NCBI GenBank assembly: GCA_965113315.1
Contig: OZ220364.1
Length of the DNA stretch: 64,000 nucleotides
Strand: one strand, 5' to 3'
Source: Podarcis vaucheri
Taxonomy: Eukaryota
Positions 20,554 through 64,000 of this stretch are shown here, piece by piece (within the stretch, counting starts at the first letter, position 1; each line of letters starts with the position of its first letter). The translations under genes and the position numbers were made by a program. The notes beneath the pieces are model-generated. The model was given only the letters and a program-made list of their open reading frames with translations. It was not told where the DNA came from and made no database searches.

Positions 20554-46275
<25,722 letters not shown>

Positions 46276-51009: not shown

Positions 51010-54000
51010 CCCTCACAATTTAAAACAATGTTTATTAGCTTGGAATAAATCTCATGTAAGATTAAATTGAAGGCCAAATATATCCTTAGAACTAGGTGAG
51101 TTAACAGTCACATCCTAATTAGTCTCATTCAAAATCATTTGGGTCTACGATACATGTTATGACAAAAGGAAATAATTTTCATAACCTTTTCCATTTCTAG
51201 TACCTACTGAGAGGCATTTCACATAAGCAAAGCCACCGGCTTTCATTCAAGTGTACATTTAAAAGGAAATGGCTAGTAATGGCAACTCTCTGATAAATGT
51301 ACCTGCCAGATCCATATTTTTAGAAACGCTCTTCATTCACACTTTCAAAAGTAGAGAATGAAGCAGTCCTGTGGATCAACAAATACAAAAGGTCTTCTGG
51401 ATTAGTTGATCACTAGAAACCCAGATGAAGCTGGTGGCACACCAACCATCTAACATATCATTTTTAAACTCATTTACTTTGAAGCAAGCAAACTCATTTC
51501 AAAGGGGCTCATTTCCAAATTGCGGAATTGGGATCACATCTTCAGTTAAATTAGAATCCAGAGCTTCCTAGTATTTTCATTTTCAAGTATCAACATACAT
51601 TTATAATTTATTCTTACACACAACAATTTTTTCAGTTATACAATCTTGTAAATAGAAACTACTGTTATCACAGTATATTTAGATGTAGCCTATAAAAATA
51701 TCTACTATACATAAAATATTTAGCCACAGTTTTACAGCACATTGAGAAATATGAAGGTGGGGGGAGGAGAGAAAGCAAATACTTCTGGTTAAGAAAAGGT
51801 TAGAAGAAAATGCTACACCTGCCAATGAAGGCTAGCTTGCAGGCTTAGCTAACTCAAAGGAGAGTATTTTCTTATAAGAACCACATTTACCACTTAAAAT
51901 CCAAAGTTATACCTGCACAATTTTCTGCTCATGAATCCTCAACTTTTCACTCAAGCCCACTAAGTAGCCAATAATAAGAATAATTACTTGTGGCTCACAT
52001 CTAGAGAAGTTAGGGCTAGGCTGTTGACACGATTCATCTGTGATTTAAGCCATTACCCAAAATCCCCTTCTCCAGCTGACACTGTACTGTGGGCCAACAG
52101 CAGAACGCTCCCTTTTCATCTACTCCAGTAAGTAGTGATCTACCTGAATAAATACATTATGATGTCAAGGCATATTCTCTTAAAGGATGGAGTACAGCTA
52201 AAGCGCTTTTGAAGTGTTTGATAGTTTCACATAGTCCTTTTTATGTTTCTGAAATAAGGTTGGCTTTATGGCTTATCTCCAGAACGCTGAATATATTGCT
52301 AAGCTACCTTATTAAAGAAATGAAGAACACGGCAGTATGTTACATTACAGCACCCAGCCACATAAACGAGTCCCCACTCGGCAAAGCTTACATAGTCCAT
52401 TGCAGAGAACTCTTAGCATTAACAGCATGGCAAGGTTCGATGAGGTACCAGCACAGACAGCAAGGCAAAAAAGCATTCAAACCACACGGAACAAAGCTTT
52501 CTTCGGTTCAAGAACAAACAGGCACCTAATCTGCTGCTTGCTGATTTGTATCACATGGACAGATTATTTACACTATACGTTGGCTTAGTACAACAAACAC
52601 AACTGGCCTAACATGCATGAAGTTTTATCACGAACAGGAATTTCTTTCACACGCCTCCCATTCATTGCAACAGGATATATCTGGAGCTTATCCCTGTTGG
52701 GTTGTGACCCTAAAGCAGGACTGATCCAATTTCACAAGTTCACTTACAGCATAGTATCCCTCTTTGCATATAAAGACTTGAAAATCCTAGAGGGCCCCGT
52801 TCTTCACTATGCTCTTGAGCTCCACTCAAGGAATGCACTGAGGCAAATATGTGGCTGCTTAAGGTTCACGGAAAGAAAGAATCCCGAGTCCTCGTTTTTG
52901 GGGGGGACGGAAGATTGTTTCCATTTATGAACGTGCAAATCCTGTTCTCATCAATAAAGTAGAAGATATGCAATAAAGGATCGCTTTCATCTTTCCCATC
53001 CAATGCATTTTAACTTAAATATCACCAATACATAAGAAAAATAAAAACCCAAAACAGCTAATACTTCATCTGTGACTTTGGTTCAAGAAGATGGGTAAGA
53101 ACAAGCTTGCATTAATGCCAATAACTCAGGAGCGCTTCATAATAATTTGGTCTCTCTAGTAATTTGTATTACACCTTCCCTGCACTGTTATTGCCATTCA
53201 CCTCTGGTAACCACCATGCACATTGTTTTATTGTATTACAATCTGCTCCATTTGGAGCAATATTTACATGAGTGTCAATTAAAAACCCTCCCTTTTCATG
53301 GGCTTCTCTGCTTGGGGTTTGGAGTTTGAGGGGGTGTAAAAAAGGGGGGGACCAGGTAAAAACCGTTAAGTAAAATATGCGGTTTTCAATAAACAGACAA
53401 AATAGGTTTGCCGTATGCATGATGTGGAAAGGAAACTATTCACACACTATTCAAATAATAATAATAACCCAGGAGTTCTGGAACATTTCAACAAGATAGA
53501 TGGAATGCATCTGGGAAAATATTACCTATTCTGGCTTTCCATTAAATGATGTGAAGCATCAAGTGGAGCCTTTAGTAAAATTACATAGAAATTAGTGCAG
53601 CTGCCAAAAAAAAAGAAAGAAAATCAAATGTTTAACTGCAAAGCAATGACTTGAAGTGGACAACACTGCTTGTTGCTAAAATTGATATATTAACTGGATT
53701 AATATATCTCACAAGGAGACTGGTGGTACCTTTTGTAGTATACTAAAATAAATAGTTGGAAGAATCCTCAGTTGAAGAAACACCTGTTCTATGTCCGGTA
53801 AAGATTTTATATATAATATAGGAATAAAACAGGAAATCACAGCAAGAAAGGCTTAGGAAAGTATTGCAGAAGAAAGCTAAGATACAGCATTAAGAGAGAC
53901 ACCAGCATTTCATACTTTTAACACCCACAGTCGAAGAACAACAGGATAAAGACAACATATATTAATTTAAAAGCAGTTTCATTCTCTGTTCCACAAATAC

Positions 54001-54204
54001 TTGGTCCATTTCAACCTTTAGTGCCAACTTTGCCTTGTGCCAGATCCAGGCAGCTGAAACACGTCTTCAAGAAGAGAAGGAGTGCATGCATTTCTGTGTT
54101 GCTTGGCTTCCTTGAAGGCTGCCTTCATTCTCAGCTCCCTGAGTGGTTTCCTTAGCACTGCTTCAGCAGTTTGGGACGGTGCTGGCAAGGGGAGGTCAAA
54201 GGTG
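51010..54204 (-). other. PFKFB4: Probable PFKFB4 3' UTR following exon D
   Basis: About 3 kb with no recognisable transposons, AU-rich; minus-strand AATAAA at 51607-51612 and 51031-51036. Confidence 0.55.
51031..51036 (-). terminator. Candidate distal PFKFB4 polyA signal AATAAA (a proximal one lies at 51607-51612)
   Basis: Plus-strand tttatt; a U-rich tract (plus-strand A-run near 50966-50981) lies downstream on the minus strand. Confidence 0.5.
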
Positions 54205-54264
54205 CTACAAATGATTAGGTACAGTCCTCAAAGCTTCTTCTCGAGAGCGGCTAACGCATACATT
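54205..54264 (-). CDS. PFKFB4: PFKFB4 duplicated terminal coding exon D (NVCVSRSREEALRTVPNHL*)
   Basis: Strong acceptor cttgttctcttttcag; 12 of 19 residues identical to the canonical tail without gaps; followed by long UTR-like sequence. Confidence 0.85.
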   Translation of the reverse strand, partial: NVCVSRSREEALRTVPNHL

Positions 54265-55223
54265 CTGAAAAGAGAACAAGACAGCAAGCTTTATATACTT
54301 CACTCAAACACAATGCTTGCCCTTTGGCCAATTCCTGAACATTTCTCACTATCTATGGGCTTTCCTTTGCTAGTTCATGGAAATATGGTGAAATTAAGGC
54401 TGTAATCCTATGCACATTTACTTTAGCATAAGACCCACCGACATCAGTGAAGCCTCGCTTCCCAGAAAATATGCATAGATTTGGGCTGGATAAAATCACA
54501 ATATTTTGTCTTAGCTGGTTCCTCTATATTTTCATGTGTTGTAACAATTTCCATCATTCCAGAATACATTTCTCAATATGCATCAGTCTTCAGTTCCATT
54601 GTTCTGAACACCAGCTTATCAGAAACTCAAAGAGATCCCAATATAGGTTCAGTTGCACTTTGAATGCTTGGTCTTAGGCCTCTGGGCCCCTTATGTAGCC
54701 CTAGGTAGAAGTCTGGTTTTTTCCAGTGTTCACTGGGAACTACCAACATAAGCACATGCTGCTAGCTGATTGAACAACCCAAATGAAATGTTTTCATTAT
54801 CGCAATCAATGCAATGACACATGCACAAGTCCAGGAGGGAGAGATCCTTAAGAGTCACAAGTTTGAACCCAGCTACAATGCCTATACACAATACTTTTCC
54901 TTCCCTTTAAACCAATAACTGTATTAGGCAACAAGCTATGTGATACTACCACCTCTCATCACAGATAAGATATGTCACGACACATTTAACACTCAACATA
55001 CTAGTCTTCAGGCATTCCAGTGGCATGTGAAAACAGCAAGCAAGCAGAGGCAAATTGCTAAGCTCCGGCTCCATCACCCTCCATAAGTTGGGACGTTAAA
55101 CATCTGAAGCAGACAACGTCCTACAGTCATGGAGGCTTCCAGTGTGATTATGGACCCAGGAAGATCTAGGTTTGAAATTGCTTAAGGAAGCCTCCACAGA
55201 TACAAGAGGTTGAAGATGTTAGA

Positions 55224-55358
55224 TCAGTCTTTCTCAACCTTAGGTTTCCAGATGTTGGACTACAACTCCAATCATCCTTAGCTAGCAGGACCAGTGGTCA
55301 GGGATGATGGGAGTTGTAGCTCAGCAACATCTTGGTGACTCAAGTGTTGAGGAAAACA
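55224..55358. mobile_element. hAT-type MITE (ggactacaactcccatcatccc family)
   Basis: Internal palindrome; homologous to the 56699 copy. Confidence 0.7.
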
Positions 55359-55680
55359 GGGGGTGAAATTTAGTGCACTTCTCCCCACTTGCAAGTTGTT
55401 TTTACACACAAGTAGAATGTCTGAACAACCAAAAATTACCCCTCAGGGACTCAAAGGCTGCCAATTGCAAATCTCTATCCTAGAAGCTCAGTCTATCCTA
55501 GACCACAGTCGTTCTAGCAGCAGCCATTTGATACAAGTTGCTACCTGATCCTTGAGGTCAAGTTAAACCGCCCTACATAGTTTCTGCTCAGGCCAAAAAA
55601 AGCCATTTATACATAGGCTTTGTGTTACCACTACAGAGTGCAAAGAAATGCACAAATAGTTTTCTAGTTGTGTTCAGATC

Positions 55681-55862
55681 AGGGCTATTGGACAAGGTAG
55701 ATCCCATGCATTGTATGCAGAAGATCCCAAGTTCAATTCCTGAGATCTCAGCTAGTGGACAATGCAAAACACCTCTGCCTGTGACCTTAGAGAGCTACTG
55801 TAATACTGGGCTTACATGGACCAAGAGCCTGATCTAATATGCAGCAGCTTCCAATATTCCTT
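55681..55862 (+). mobile_element. Degraded Squam3-like SINE
   Basis: gcattgtatgcagaagatcccaagttcaattcctg...gcagcttcc. Confidence 0.5.
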
Positions 55863-56407
55863 ACACATTTTCAAACTCCTATTGGAGTTTTCAAAGTTTG
55901 TCCTGTCCAACTGCATCCGATACTCAACTCTCCCACACAATATGAACATTTTGTCCTGTCAATGAGCCAGACAGATGTGTACCCAAGGAGCTCTAATGAG
56001 TGCCCCAATGATCTTTACCTACCATCAAGCACACCATCATTTTATTCTAAAAGCCTGAACCAACTTTTCTCCACCATCAGAAGTGGTACATCTCCCCAAA
56101 AGCAAGATTTCCAGGTAACAGATTTGGGAGCAGTGAACTCATCTCTTTGCAGGATGAACTGAGTCATCCTACTCTTCAATGGAAGTACGAAACACAAATG
56201 TGTAAGGCACATACCCAAGGCACCCTAATGATTATACCTGCTCCAGTGTAGGTTTGCATGGTTCATGCCAACTTTTAAGAAAATTGCTGCTAATACGTTT
56301 TCCATTCATCTACACATCGACTTCTACAAACTGACTTCCTGGTGCAGAACAGAGATCAAAGAAGTAGGAAGAAGACATTCATAAGACACCTGTACAGGTA
56401 TCGGTTT

Positions 56408-56464
56408 TCAGCAAGGCCTGCTAGCCGCTGGCAGTATAACAGTTGTTATTCTCCTTCTCGGAGA
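56408..56464 (-). CDS. PFKFB4: Candidate PFKFB4 alternative C-terminal exon C (SPRRRITTVILPAASRPC*)
   Basis: Acceptor ctcattttttttgaag; 18 codons then TGA; donor CAG|gtgtct 18 nt after the stop (exon 56390..56464); shares an RR..TVI motif with exon B. Confidence 0.45.
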   Translation of the reverse strand, partial: SPRRRITTVILPAASRPC

Positions 56465-56698
56465 CTTCAAAAAAAATGAGCTGTTATTCTACCCTTAAGT
56501 GAAATTAAATAGGTTTCAGTTAACAAGAATGAACTCAATCTCTTAGAATGAAGACATTAGTAGTATTTGTACTCTTCAAACACAAAACGTGAGATGAGAA
56601 CATGCATTCTTATCAAAAGGGCTCTTGATTTAAGCTGCTAGGGTTTCATACCACATAGCATCATCTACCAGATCCTCTCCTCCCTTTATTACCTTGGC

Positions 56699-56834
56699 CA
56701 GGCATAGGCAAACTTTGCCCTCCAGCTGTTTTGGGACTACAACTCCCATCATCCCTAGCTAACAGGACCAGCGGTCAGGGGTGATGGGAATTGTAGTCCC
56801 AAAACATCTGGAGAGCTGAGTTTGCCTATGCCTG
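56699..56834. mobile_element. hAT-type MITE
   Basis: TIRs caggcataggcaaact / agtttgcctatgcctg; TSD accttggc / accttgac. Confidence 0.85.
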
Positions 56835-57849
56835 ACCTTGACTATTATCCAGGAAAGACATGAGATCCCTAATCAAAGCACTGTAGGGTGTTACAGTCTT
56901 GCATCTGGCCTTTGAGATTAACATCAGTTAAACATCTTAATGGAATCCAAGATATACATAGATACAGAAATCTTAACCAGTCCTGAAGAACAAAAAATCC
57001 AGTATCTAGGATCTTTTCTTTCAGTTCTCAAATGCAAGACCTCCTAGAGATTCACAAGGATATGTGCTCCTTTCCCTTACTTTGCCACGAGATATCACCA
57101 TAATTGTGATATCGATCTTACAAAACTAAAACTCCTGGATTTAAGCTGGGGAGGGGGGCTAACGTTTTCCGGTCAAGGGCTGCACTGACCCATGCCCAAC
57201 ACTGTGAGAAGAATGGTAAACTGGGCTAAGGCCAAAGAAGGAAATTAATCCCTTTTATTATCTTTCCATTTAAGCCAACCCATTTCTTTCCTTCCCCAAT
57301 TCATTCTATTTGTATTTTCTTTTATATACTTTTAGCTGATTGTTTTCCCTCAAAGTCCCACTTCCGCCACTCAAAATTCACACAAATTCATTTTATTTAT
57401 TCACTGTGATGCTGATGCCATTGGTTTTCTTTGTTCTGCTGACGCAGGGAGAGGAGAGAAATTGCCAAAAACGTTTCAAATAAGAAGCCATCAAACCTCT
57501 TAGCTGATGGGTTGGCCTGATCTAAGCAATGTAACCATAAGCACCACCGAAGCTGATTCTCTAGCCCCAACCCCCAACATGAAGTTAGTCTAGTGAAAAT
57601 CGGTTGAACAAAGCAAGTGCCTCTGTTGGGGGAGAGGCTGTTCCTGGCAACATCTCTGGCCCCTATAATAGTTTTGTTTATATGTGGCAATGCAGGATTC
57701 AAGTGACAAACTTTTTCTAATCTACCAAACTTGTTTACAAGATGCTTAGAATTTAGAGTATGTAAGTTAGCAGCAGCTACACTGCTTTGGTTTGGTTTTG
57801 TGAATCACCCTGGGAATTATTTGGCTGTCAGGAAGTATGAAATGATTTA

Positions 57850-58091
57850 CAGTGGTACCTCGGGTTACATACACTTCAGGTTACATACGCTTCAGGTTAC
57901 AGACTCTGCTAACCCAGAAATAGTACCTCAGGTTAAGAACTTTACCTCAGGATGAGAACAGAAATCGTGCTCCGGCGGTGCGGCAGCAGTGGGAGGCCCC
58001 ATTAGCTGAAGTGGTGCTTCAGGTTAAGAACAGTTTCAGGTTAAGAACGAACCTCTGGAACAAATTATGTACTTAACCCGAGGTACCACTG
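57850..58091. mobile_element. Tc1/mariner-type MITE (family 1, inverted relative to the 3593 copy)
   Basis: ta|cagtggtacctcgggtt ... aacccgaggtaccactg|ta. Confidence 0.9.
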
Positions 58092-58538
58092 TATTTATTT
58101 TTTAAGTACTGCAGTTTACTGGCCCATCTCGACATATGGGGAAGCTCCACCTTTTTCCTTTTGGAATTTTACAGCATCATCTTGAAGCACAAATGCCATT
58201 GTGTGTACTAAAATGCTTCTTCTCAGAACCGCCCCCGCCCCCCGCAAGCTGCTTTCGAATCTCCGAGGAGGTAAATTTATGTCAGGGGTTGGGAACTTCA
58301 GGCCTGGGGGCTTCTCTGTCTGGGTCTCAGGACTCTCCTCTTCCTCCTCAGCAACATACCCTCTCTCCCCAGGCCACACCCCTCAGCAGCCCAACTTTGC
58401 ACCATCTACAGCCTAGAATGGAGAAGCAACAGGGAAAGGAGTAGTTGTGTATTATTCCTTTCCACAAGTGCCATTTCTTTACTCCATATTGACAGTGGTT
58501 CTATCCAGAGGTGTTTCAAATGCATGTTTACCCTGGTA

Positions 58539-58598
58539 TTAGTAATGTCTAGTAACTTCACGGGAGTAAGAAATAACAGTTTGCCTCCGTTTGCCAAA
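58539..58598 (-). CDS. PFKFB4: Candidate PFKFB4 alternative C-terminal exon B (FGKRRQTVISYSREVTRHY*)
   Basis: Acceptor tttcttctacag; 19 codons then TAA; donor AGG|gtaaac 7 nt after the stop (exon 58532..58598). Confidence 0.55.
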   Translation of the reverse strand, partial: FGKRRQTVISYSREVTRHY

Positions 58599-59629
58599 CT
58601 GTAGAAGAAATATATTTCTATGATTCTACTTTATAAAGAAAACAAATTAAGACATTACTACTATGAGTCCTCTTCATATAAATTATAAATTAGGGCTGCC
58701 ACCCTATTAAAAACACCTTTGTTGACTGATTGAATCTATTCACTAAAATTCATGCTATTTCAAGAAACTGCATCTGAATAGAATAAAAGAGTCCTGAAGC
58801 AAGAAGCATATTTCTTTTTTTTCTTATAAAATGTTTAGTTTAGTTATAGCAGGCAACTTCTTAGACGAGGCATTCCTTCTCATGTGAACGAAAAGAGAAA
58901 GGCCTCTTTTTAATGGGTGTTTAAAAGAGTCTTAACACCACCTGCAGTTGTTGTTTTTAAAAACTAACAATATTTTTAAATTAGCTTTTAAAAATTAGCT
59001 GTCAAAGTAATTAGAAGTACAAATTAAACTTTAAATGATCAATTAATCCCATAATAAATTTTGCAGACCTTTTTTTGAAATCACAGAAATACATCTTCCA
59101 CAAAGACAGGGGCAAGAACACTATTTCCCAGAAGCTACTATTAAACAGTCATAGAATTCTATGGTTCTATGAATTAGCAGACGATCTACATTGCCGATAC
59201 TATTCACTAGCTGTGAAACTAACTGTAGAAAGACTATTAATTATGCTCCTCTATGTAAAACAATCCAATCACTCAAGAGAAAATAAAAATACTCATTAAT
59301 AGACAACTGCCCCATATTATCTCCCAACAGGGTTTGAGTGTTTGATCAAGCCTTAACGGACATAAAACATCAGGTTTAAAATTAGCAATCACCAATTGAT
59401 CAAGTGTTATATCAGAGAAGCCAGTAATCAGATGGCTCAGCCAATTAGTTCCAATCCAGGGGGTAGGGGACAATAAGATTTGATTGTTTGATTTCTAAAA
59501 GCCACGAGCTACACAAAAACTGATATTATCTGTGGATGATTCCAAAGTGATTGGAACAATTGAAATAATTTTAATATAATATGATGAAAAGAAGCACCAC
59601 ACGTTTCATAGCTGATCAGGACACGGGCT

Positions 59630-59689
59630 TCACTGGTGAGCAGGGACAGTTACAAGGGCTTCCTCGGGAGGTCTTGAAATGTCTACATT
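59630..59689 (-). CDS. PFKFB4: PFKFB4 canonical C-terminal coding exon (NVDISRPPEEALVTVPAHQ*)
   Basis: Minus-strand acceptor ttattattacacag. The phase-0 translation matches the C-terminus of mammalian PFKFB4 as recalled. Upstream catalytic exons lie outside the window. Confidence 0.92.
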   Translation of the reverse strand, partial: NVDISRPPEEALVTVPAHQ

Positions 59690-60086
59690 CTGTGTAATAA
59701 TAAAAATACAGAGGAAAATGTTTATCATGCAACATGGCCAGTCAGCTTTCTTCACAAGTAAACAGCCGAGCTTGTTAAATTAACAAATATAGTCACTTAT
59801 CTAGAGCAATAAAGCTTTTTTAAACCAGAGACAGTGGAATTGCCTTCTTTATAGACTGCGTTTAATAATTCTGTGGACCACAGGCTAAGTGCTGGCAGCT
59901 CTCCTCAAAACACACACACACACAGAAACTGCTTATGTTTAGAGTATCTCAACTATATAACTATATTTAAAAGCTTGTGATTCATTACATTATGCATAGC
60001 ACATTCATACTGCAAAAAGCAAGTCTTATCAGCCAGATACCATTAAATAGAAGTGAACAATTGGGAGGGGGTTGGGTGCCAGGAGA

Positions 60087-61908: not shown

Positions 61909-64000
61909 CTACAGAAAGGGGGGACCCTCATATGAAACAGTTAACAGAAATTACTAATAAATATTTACAGACAGCATATTCACCTTCTACAACACCTCTC
62001 AGCCTCCTGGCTCTCATCCATGGCCCAAACAAACTTTCAGACTAACCCCCAAATAACTCACAATAAAGAGAGTTCCTGGAACGTGCTGGCATTACCATAG
62101 TTCTTTACTCTCAGGCTTGCTTTTATGGGCAATCAAATCCTATACCTGTTTAGTAAGAAACAGGTGAAACTCTGTTCTATGGGATTTACTCCCAACTATG
62201 TGAGTAGGGAACTGCACCCCTGTGTGTGTACACAGGTTGGCTAGTAATATTGGAAGACATGTATATGGCCGGCTTGTATTCTTATTGTGACAAAACATCG
62301 TTAAACCTGCTACCCAAAACTGTAGAGCTAACAATACCTACTTACTTTCAGTATCCAAACATTGTAAAACAGTAATTTGGCAGCCAAGGCTGGCTAAAAT
62401 TGTAGGCAGCCTTGGAAAAATGTCTTAGTGGCCGTTTTGATTCATTTGATATCCAGTATCATTTTGCCATAATCAAGAATATGATGGCAAGAACATGGTA
62501 AAAAATCTCCCATGAAACATCACTAAAAATAGAGTTACTGCTCAATCCTAAAGGACAATCTTATCACTATCAAGAGGATACCTACAGTAACCAAAAGATG
62601 TTCATTTACAACGAGCCAGAGACCCTGCTACCCAAACCTATGAAACACTGAGCAGCTGACAGAAACCAATCCTAAATCTCAAAAATATATTCTGTTTTCA
62701 TCCAGGTTCTGTTCTTCCTGCAGTTTTACACAATTATGCACCATGAAGCCAGATCAGAACTGAATGCTGGTATTGTGCCGCTGCATCAACCAACCCAAAC
62801 AAAGAAACACATGGTTGCCTTTCAAGGACTTGCACATTTTACAAAATGAGTGTTTCTTAAACGCTTCAGCATGTCCAGAAAAGCTTCTCTCTCACCTTTT
62901 TATTCACACACAGTTTAAATAGAAGCCGTTAACAGCTGCCTACCAACCAAGTGGCCATGGATGAGTCATTTGCAAAACACTCCTTGATCAAAAGAGTAAG
63001 GCAACACTGTTAAAGCTGCTAAAAACACACAGCATTCAGATCCAACAGAGCGACTTAACGCAATGAAAATACTGTATTGAGTTAAGCAAACAATTGGGTG
63101 GCAGCACAACGCCTAACTGTGGCAGTTTTTAGGGCTTTCATTGAACAGCTTGCTGTCTGCTCTGCATCACTGCTCACCATAACATCACCTGAATACAAGG
63201 CTACAGACTGTTACAATTGAGGCACTGTTATTTCCCCCAAAGTGGAGTCGTATAATTAGCTGCCAAATTCACTCAGATGACATACGCTGTATTATGAAAG
63301 CACTGTGCAATTAAAGAGTGTCATAATGTTGTCATGAAGGAGAGAAGATTCCATGAAACACAAGTGAAGCAGGCATGAAGATGATGAGTTGTCAGAGAAT
63401 AAAACAATTTCCTTTGTTTTGCAGAGCATTTACCTGAAGTTCCAAAATCCACTACAAGCTCCATTTTAAAGAATGCTCAAATTAAATGACTGTTGTATGC
63501 GCCACTGCACATGACCTCTTGTTCTATTTCTCCTCAAATGATGCCAATAAGTCAGAGACCATGTGCAGAAGGTAATGACATCACAAAAAATAGGTATATA
63601 ATGAAGATCTGGTCATTTTCTAGCATCACAAAGGAGCAAACATAGCACATTTTCCTCTGTTTTTAATGGTATATAATTAGGCTTTTGTGTGCTAATTTGC
63701 TAGTAGAAATAATGACATGTTTGGGAGCTTACAATCCTATCATCACCCCAAGCCATTCAAACCAATGACACTATACTAGCTCACTTTGGTTACTGTTTCT
63801 CAAGGGACTTATTAAAAAACTTCCAGAATAATTACCATTGGTTCAGTCTACATAAATATATCTTGCAATGCATTATACATAGCCCTTGATTTTTATTCTA
63901 ATGTTCACCAAACCCACACATGTAAGAGCAACAAGATATAAGAGGCCCGACTTCGTATTTGAGCAGGCCATTTATCCTGTGCAGGTTATACTTTTGTTTG

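Follow-up and report, generated by a model that had tools for sequence, protein, structure and literature searches.

Two homologous tail exons at the 3' end of a lizard PFKFB4 gene and their probable use as alternative C-terminal ends

The 64,000-nucleotide stretch of Podarcis vaucheri DNA analysed here (contig OZ220364.1 of assembly GCA_965113315.1; hereafter the window) contains, on its minus strand, only the 3' end of PFKFB4, a gene for a PFK-2/FBPase-2 isozyme. The activities of PFK-2/FBPase-2 control fructose-2,6-bisphosphate and thereby glycolytic flux. At this 3' end we found two paralogous tail exons, A and D, which probably act as a two-copy tail pair: a stop-bearing cassette exon (A) and a terminal exon (D) would choose between two 19-residue PFKFB4 ends. 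An original prediction for this DNA had proposed a tail switch built from four mutually exclusive exons, A, B, C, and D. A two-way cassette-exon switch is partly supported by our data, with a sample-dependent use of A, but the four-way array is not.

No sequencing run of P. vaucheri itself was recorded as RNA; for RNA evidence, the candidates were 18 small runs from related lizard species, whose type was guessed as RNA, each containing approximately 0.2-0.3 of the window's words. Four runs were mapped as contigs, namely X1 (organism A), X2 and X6 (organism B, two studies), and X14 (organism C). The features at the PFKFB4 end, with the evidence on which each was placed, are as follows.

59603-59689, minus strand: exon A, internal, 87 nucleotides (translation, match to the rat enzyme, contig joints in X1, X6, and X14)
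59570-59575, minus strand: ATTAAA, 28 nucleotides beyond the exon A donor, which might serve as a poly(A) signal when the donor stays unused (motif only)
54265-59602, minus strand: intron between A and D, 5338 nucleotides, GT..AG (contig joints, three runs), holding frames B and C and several repeats like short interspersed elements (SINEs)
58539-58598, minus strand: segment B, chance open frame in the A-D intron (background similarity, unspliced contigs)
56408-56464, minus strand: segment C, chance open frame in the A-D intron (background similarity, unspliced contigs)
51590-54264, minus strand: exon D, terminal, 3' end approximate (paralogy to A, contigs, poly(A) signal)
51607-51612, minus strand: AATAAA poly(A) signal, near the ends of the D contigs

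The frame of exon A (59630-59689, minus strand) reads NVDISRPPEEALVTVPAHQ followed by a stop, which gives a tail of 19 residues. In a Protein Data Bank (PDB) search, 18 of the 19 residues were identical to residues 451-469 of the rat testis PFK-2/FBPase-2 (1BIF/2BIF/3BIF; E = 4.8e-05), and the liver enzyme PFKFB1 (1K6M) was a weaker match (E = 0.019). The match bears out the earlier description of A as the canonical PFKFB4 tail. Judged by its sequence, segment A is the C-terminal end of PFKFB4, the gene being assigned from exon A. In the rat protein, a Gln stands directly before the tail. Exon A is composed of 19 tail codons (59633-59689), the stop TGA (59630-59632), and 27 nucleotides of 3' untranslated region (3'UTR). 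Its acceptor AG lies at 59690-59691 and its donor GT at 59601-59602; the donor, AAC/GTGTGG (the slash marks the exon border), is weak. No penultimate exon (...VNTHR(D/E)...) was found on the minus strand between 59689 and the window end at 64000, and the remainder of PFKFB4 therefore lies beyond base 64000. When a 49-residue frame around tail A was searched against a protein collection, only open reading frame calls were recovered (P0001-P0003 and P0006, from Logan/NCBI contigs of related genomes). All four calls, P0001, P0002, P0003, and P0006, read the intron and exon A with the TGA as Trp; they are gene-calling artefacts and no real proteins.

The frame of exon D (54205-54264, minus strand) reads NVCVSRSREEALRTVPNHL followed by a stop; the tail again has 19 residues and ends in ...TVPNHL. 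The 19 codons of the exon (54208-54264) are paralogous to those of A; they are followed by the stop TAG (54205-54207) and by approximately 2.6 kilobases (kb) of 3'UTR. Single contigs extend from the D acceptor (54264/54267) to about 51640 in X2, 51770 in X6, and 52480 in X1, and the depth of the D contigs is 2-9 times that of the intron.

Tails A and D are identical at 12 of 19 residues and at 34 of 60 bases. The pair was matched by BLASTP with E = 2e-08 (the preceding cag codon included), and its ungapped score was 51, compared with a background maximum of 35 for the whole 64-kb window read in six frames. A six-frame scan of the same 64 kb found two copies only of the tail exon. Moreover, the length (19 codons and a stop), the phase, the stop position, and the acceptor cag/AATGTA are common to A and D. 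The similarity stops at the exon borders; the flanks are 27-40% identical, which is about random, and cannot be aligned. The pattern kept in both tails is N-V-x-(I/V)-S-R-x-x-E-E-A-L-x-T-V-P-x-H-x. The tails differ at seven positions, and the net charge shifts by about three units, from about -2 in A to about +1 in D. On this comparison A and D are tandem duplicates of the last PFKFB4 coding exon, so the tandem exon duplication that had been proposed stands for this pair.

At 7 of the 12 conserved residues, A and D use different codons, e.g. TCA and AGC for Ser, AGA and CGC for Arg, and CTT and TTG for Leu. When the neutral decay of A was simulated with the same 26 base changes, a mean of 5.4 of the 19 residues was kept, the probability of keeping at least 12 was 2.5e-5, and the frame and stop survived in 0.13 of the trials. 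Because a 12/19 identity is so improbable under neutral decay, D has been kept as coding sequence. This single pairwise comparison, which has no outgroup, indicates that the duplication is old and that the D peptide has been under long purifying selection as coding sequence. Other searches added little. The PDB search with tail D returned chance matches only. The alignment of the A and D frames, used as a query, found no homologous proteins of 27-86 residues, a result that says nothing on longer proteins. The NCBIfam scan of these eukaryotic fragments was uninformative.

In the contigs of X1, X6, and X14, which belong to three studies, position 59603 is joined to 54264, with 5338 bases left out between them. 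On the plus strand the ends of this omitted stretch read CT..AC, i.e., GT..AG on the minus strand, and its position is unambiguous. The depth of the joint was 41.7 in X1, 149.2 in X6, and 16.9 in X14, and that of the corresponding D contigs was 45.8, 164.7, and 33.4, respectively. The occurrence of this joint in three runs means that exon A is internal and exon D is terminal. Furthermore, A and D were found in one mRNA in X1, X6, and X14, contrary to the claim that the tail exons are mutually exclusive.

The pattern in X2 was distinctly different. The A-to-D joint was absent from this run, which comes from the same species as X6. One unbroken X2 contig (58844-59850) crosses both splice sites of exon A at a flat depth of 16.8, which is intron level. 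The assembly graph has no branch that would point to splicing of A. The depth of the X2 D contig was 117.5, versus 41.4 for its unspliced continuation. This D contig ends at 54267, three bases beyond the acceptor, where the alternative path has CAG in common with the intron end. It follows that the spliced partner of D ends in CAG, whereas the last three bases of exon A are AAC. CAG is one of the codons for Gln, the residue before the tail in the rat protein. The X2 pattern fits a penultimate exon joined directly to D with tail D in frame, a junction that we infer from the end of the contig. The use of exon A thus differs between samples of one species (X2 and X6).

We propose that an old tandem duplication would have given rise to two copies of the last PFKFB4 coding exon. 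The upstream copy A would now be an internal cassette exon with its own stop, and the downstream copy D would be a constitutive terminal exon with the 3'UTR and the poly(A) signal. If A is included, the protein would end in tail A, and D would be untranslated and serve as 3'UTR. The usual rule for nonsense-mediated decay sets the distance from stop to junction at 50-55 nucleotides. The TGA of exon A is 27 nucleotides from the exon junction, and with a stop less than 50 nucleotides before the last junction the mRNA should escape this decay. If A is skipped, the upstream phase-0 exon would join D directly, and the protein would end in tail D; since D has the acceptor phase of A, the skipping of A would automatically give an in-frame tail. 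The terminal regions of this enzyme family are reported to be regulatory (PMC4178209), from which we infer that the choice of tail may alter the kinase/bisphosphatase balance.

Several points weigh against this choice between two translated ends. No junction leading from the upstream constitutive exon into D was observed, that exon being beyond base 64000. The partner of D in X2 is known by its last three bases only, and many exons end in CAG. In X1, X6, and X14, the A-to-D joint together with unspliced RNA makes up about the whole D depth, and skipping of A must therefore be rare or absent in these runs. The 60 nucleotides of D are identical in X1 and X2, but these close relatives diverge by only 1-4% overall. 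The runs were only guessed to be RNA, and the contigs carry neither strand nor quantitative information; the spliced A-to-D joint and the depth step do indicate that the mapped runs contain RNA. A rival explanation is that D is only a 3'UTR exon today, formerly coding, that all proteins end in tail A, and that the X2 partner is another non-coding or unrelated exon. The unobserved junction into D, the frequency of CAG at exon ends, and the A-to-D joint, about as deep as the D contig in three of the four runs, speak for this explanation. Nevertheless, we consider it unlikely. The frame, length, and stop position of D are intact, and its peptide has been conserved through saturated synonymous change, which is hard to achieve without translation. 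Furthermore, X2 contains abundant D without any spliced use of A, and with the acceptor phase common to A and D, skipping yields an in-frame tail.

It was also considered that A and D could be alternative last exons of the classical type, in which A uses its own poly(A) site (ATTAAA, 59575), D is used when A is skipped, and the A-to-D splice is a minor by-product. The ATTAAA is 28 nucleotides beyond a weak donor, as listed above, and in P0001 and P0002, from more distant relatives, a Leu codon takes the place of the GTG at the exon A donor of the window. Judged from these protein calls, the donor, and hence the A-to-D splice, may be lineage-specific. However, the A-to-D joint has approximately 90% of the depth of the D contig in X1 and X6, so it is a major form there, and in X6 the depth falls to 0 in the segment that follows exon A closely (59273-59471). 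Polyadenylation at the ATTAAA behind A as the basis of the tail choice is thus quite improbable, and the cassette use of A before a constitutive D is the reading that we prefer.

The proposal that A, B, C, and D are four mutually exclusive alternative last exons has very little left in its favour, and we give it scarcely any credence. Its sequence observations were accurate: the four segments translate exactly as described, B to FGKRRQTVISYSREVTRHY and C to SPRRRITTVILPAASRPC, each followed by a stop; all four follow an AG, give tails of 18-19 residues, and hold an in-frame ACT-GT. However, on the minus strand between 54100 and 59800 there are 408 AG sites, of which 64 open a comparable tail of 15-23 residues. 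B and C scored 11-19 against A and D, values that lie within the background (the best random scores were 26, 21, and 19), and the duplication claim fails for these two segments. A polypyrimidine tract had been claimed for each segment; the pyrimidine fraction is 0.85 at D, and the tracts of B (0.60) and C (0.65) are weak. Thr-Val lies at positions 7-9 in B and C versus 14-15 in A and D, and it is present in 9 of the 64 comparable tails of the region, so the common dipeptide is a post hoc pick. The ACT-GT common to all four segments was likewise chosen after the fact, as was the penultimate His in B.

The contigs lead to the same result. No junction into B (58598) or C (56464), such as the original prediction called for, was present in the four runs. 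At the B acceptor, no splicing was seen, and contigs of X14 (58234-58650) and X2 (58593-58873) run through it at a depth of 0-9. Similarly, no splicing was seen at the C acceptor, which contigs of X1 (56169-56574), X2 (55588-56725), and X14 (55318-56725) cross at the depth of the neighbouring intron. With background-level similarity and unspliced contigs over both acceptors, B and C were rejected as tail exons; the presence of A and D in one mRNA is a further point against four exclusive ends.

The terminal regions of PFK-2/FBPase-2 modulate its two opposing activities (PMC4178209), and the C-terminal splice variants of PFKFB3 and PFKFB2, to which the original prediction had referred, are established (PMC4178209, PMC7926708). 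In PFKFB3, the variable C-terminal region starts from exon 15 and gives the u-PFK2/i-PFK2 and brain UBI2K variants (PMC4178209, PMC7926708). The lizard PFKFB4 pair would resemble this system, in which small 3' cassette exons, in or out, change a short regulatory C-terminus while the catalytic core stays constant. The C-terminal exons of PFKFB3 are not known to be related in sequence, and they contain phosphorylation sites. In contrast, the two alternatives in lizard PFKFB4 are equally long paralogues, and a stop is built into the switch exon. In PFKFB2, a 58-kDa and a 54-kDa isoform arise when the terminal exon 15 is alternatively spliced (PMC4178209), so that there too an alternative C-terminus is made at the last exon. 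However, these two isoforms are unequal in length and in the presence of Akt/AMPK sites, whereas tails A and D of PFKFB4 are equal in length and homologous.

For PFKFB4 itself, splice variants in which the C-terminal part is altered are reported from the rat (Minchenko et al. 2008, summarised in PMC4178209). They concern the same gene, but the summary describes them as deletions, inserts, or changed length. The earlier statement that mammalian PFKFB4 ends in tail A was too strong in view of these rat variants. A recently studied human PFKFB4 variant skips exon 6, not the tail (PMC12639319). None of the papers found describes a PFKFB4 gene with two homologous copies of the tail exon, and a search for PFKFB4 in combination with lizard likewise gave nothing relevant. 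Tandemly duplicated homologous exons in animal genes are used alternatively, with both copies under purifying selection, and they are typically internal and mutually exclusive. Unlike these, A and D can both be present in one mRNA, and it would be the stop in A that makes the two protein ends exclusive. In this respect the pair is like 3'UTR introns that escape nonsense-mediated decay, an escape predicted here from the short stop-to-junction distance in the sequence.

The A-D tail pair is an unusual but understandable architecture. A duplicated terminal exon would act as a protein-level switch without nonsense-mediated decay, in which the internal copy bears a stop and the terminal copy doubles as the 3'UTR. 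Beyond this, we can only tentatively suggest that squamate, perhaps wider vertebrate, PFKFB4 makes two isoenzymes by tissue-specific skipping of the stop-bearing tail exon, with different kinase/bisphosphatase ratios or partner binding. If that suggestion is true, it would represent an unreported regulatory layer for an isozyme to which one canonical C-terminus is usually ascribed. A conserved second PFKFB4 tail, if true, would offer a natural isoform pair with seven residue differences and a clean handle on tail function. Both isoforms are probably already present in automated lizard genome annotations based on RNA-seq.

The coverage of the A-D intron was uneven. The half near D (54298-57680) had a depth of 5-40 in all runs, and the depth of 58278-58875 was about 0 in X1 and X6. 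Slow removal of the 3' part of the intron, another transcript, or contig filtering could each cause the difference between 54298-57680 and 58278-59272. A SINE-like element of very high copy number (ggtacctcgggttaag...) is located at 57850-58100 of the window, where the summed contig depth reached 80,000-350,000 in all four runs; such a depth indicates that this element is abundant in the transcribed sequence of these lizards. A second short repeat (...caactcccatcatccctgaccactggtcctg...) has two copies within the A-D intron, at 55276-55340 and 56720-56840, in opposite orientation. In the read layout, the copies of the caactcccatcatccctgaccactggtcctg repeat were the source of numerous false joints and of 'opposite strands' records.

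A protein kinase C (PKC) gene of the delta/theta subfamily occupies 36000-46272 of the window on the plus strand, and its last coding exon ends near 46272. Its kinase-domain exons were placed approximately as follows.

39451-39654, plus strand: PKC kinase-domain exon
43600-43794, plus strand: PKC kinase-domain exon
44595-44885, plus strand: PKC kinase-domain exon
45329-45460, plus strand: PKC kinase-domain exon

The best solved-structure match of this gene is PKC theta, and its C-terminal motif is one that we take to resemble PKC delta. The PKC gene and PFKFB4 are convergent, with approximately 5 kb between their 3' ends.

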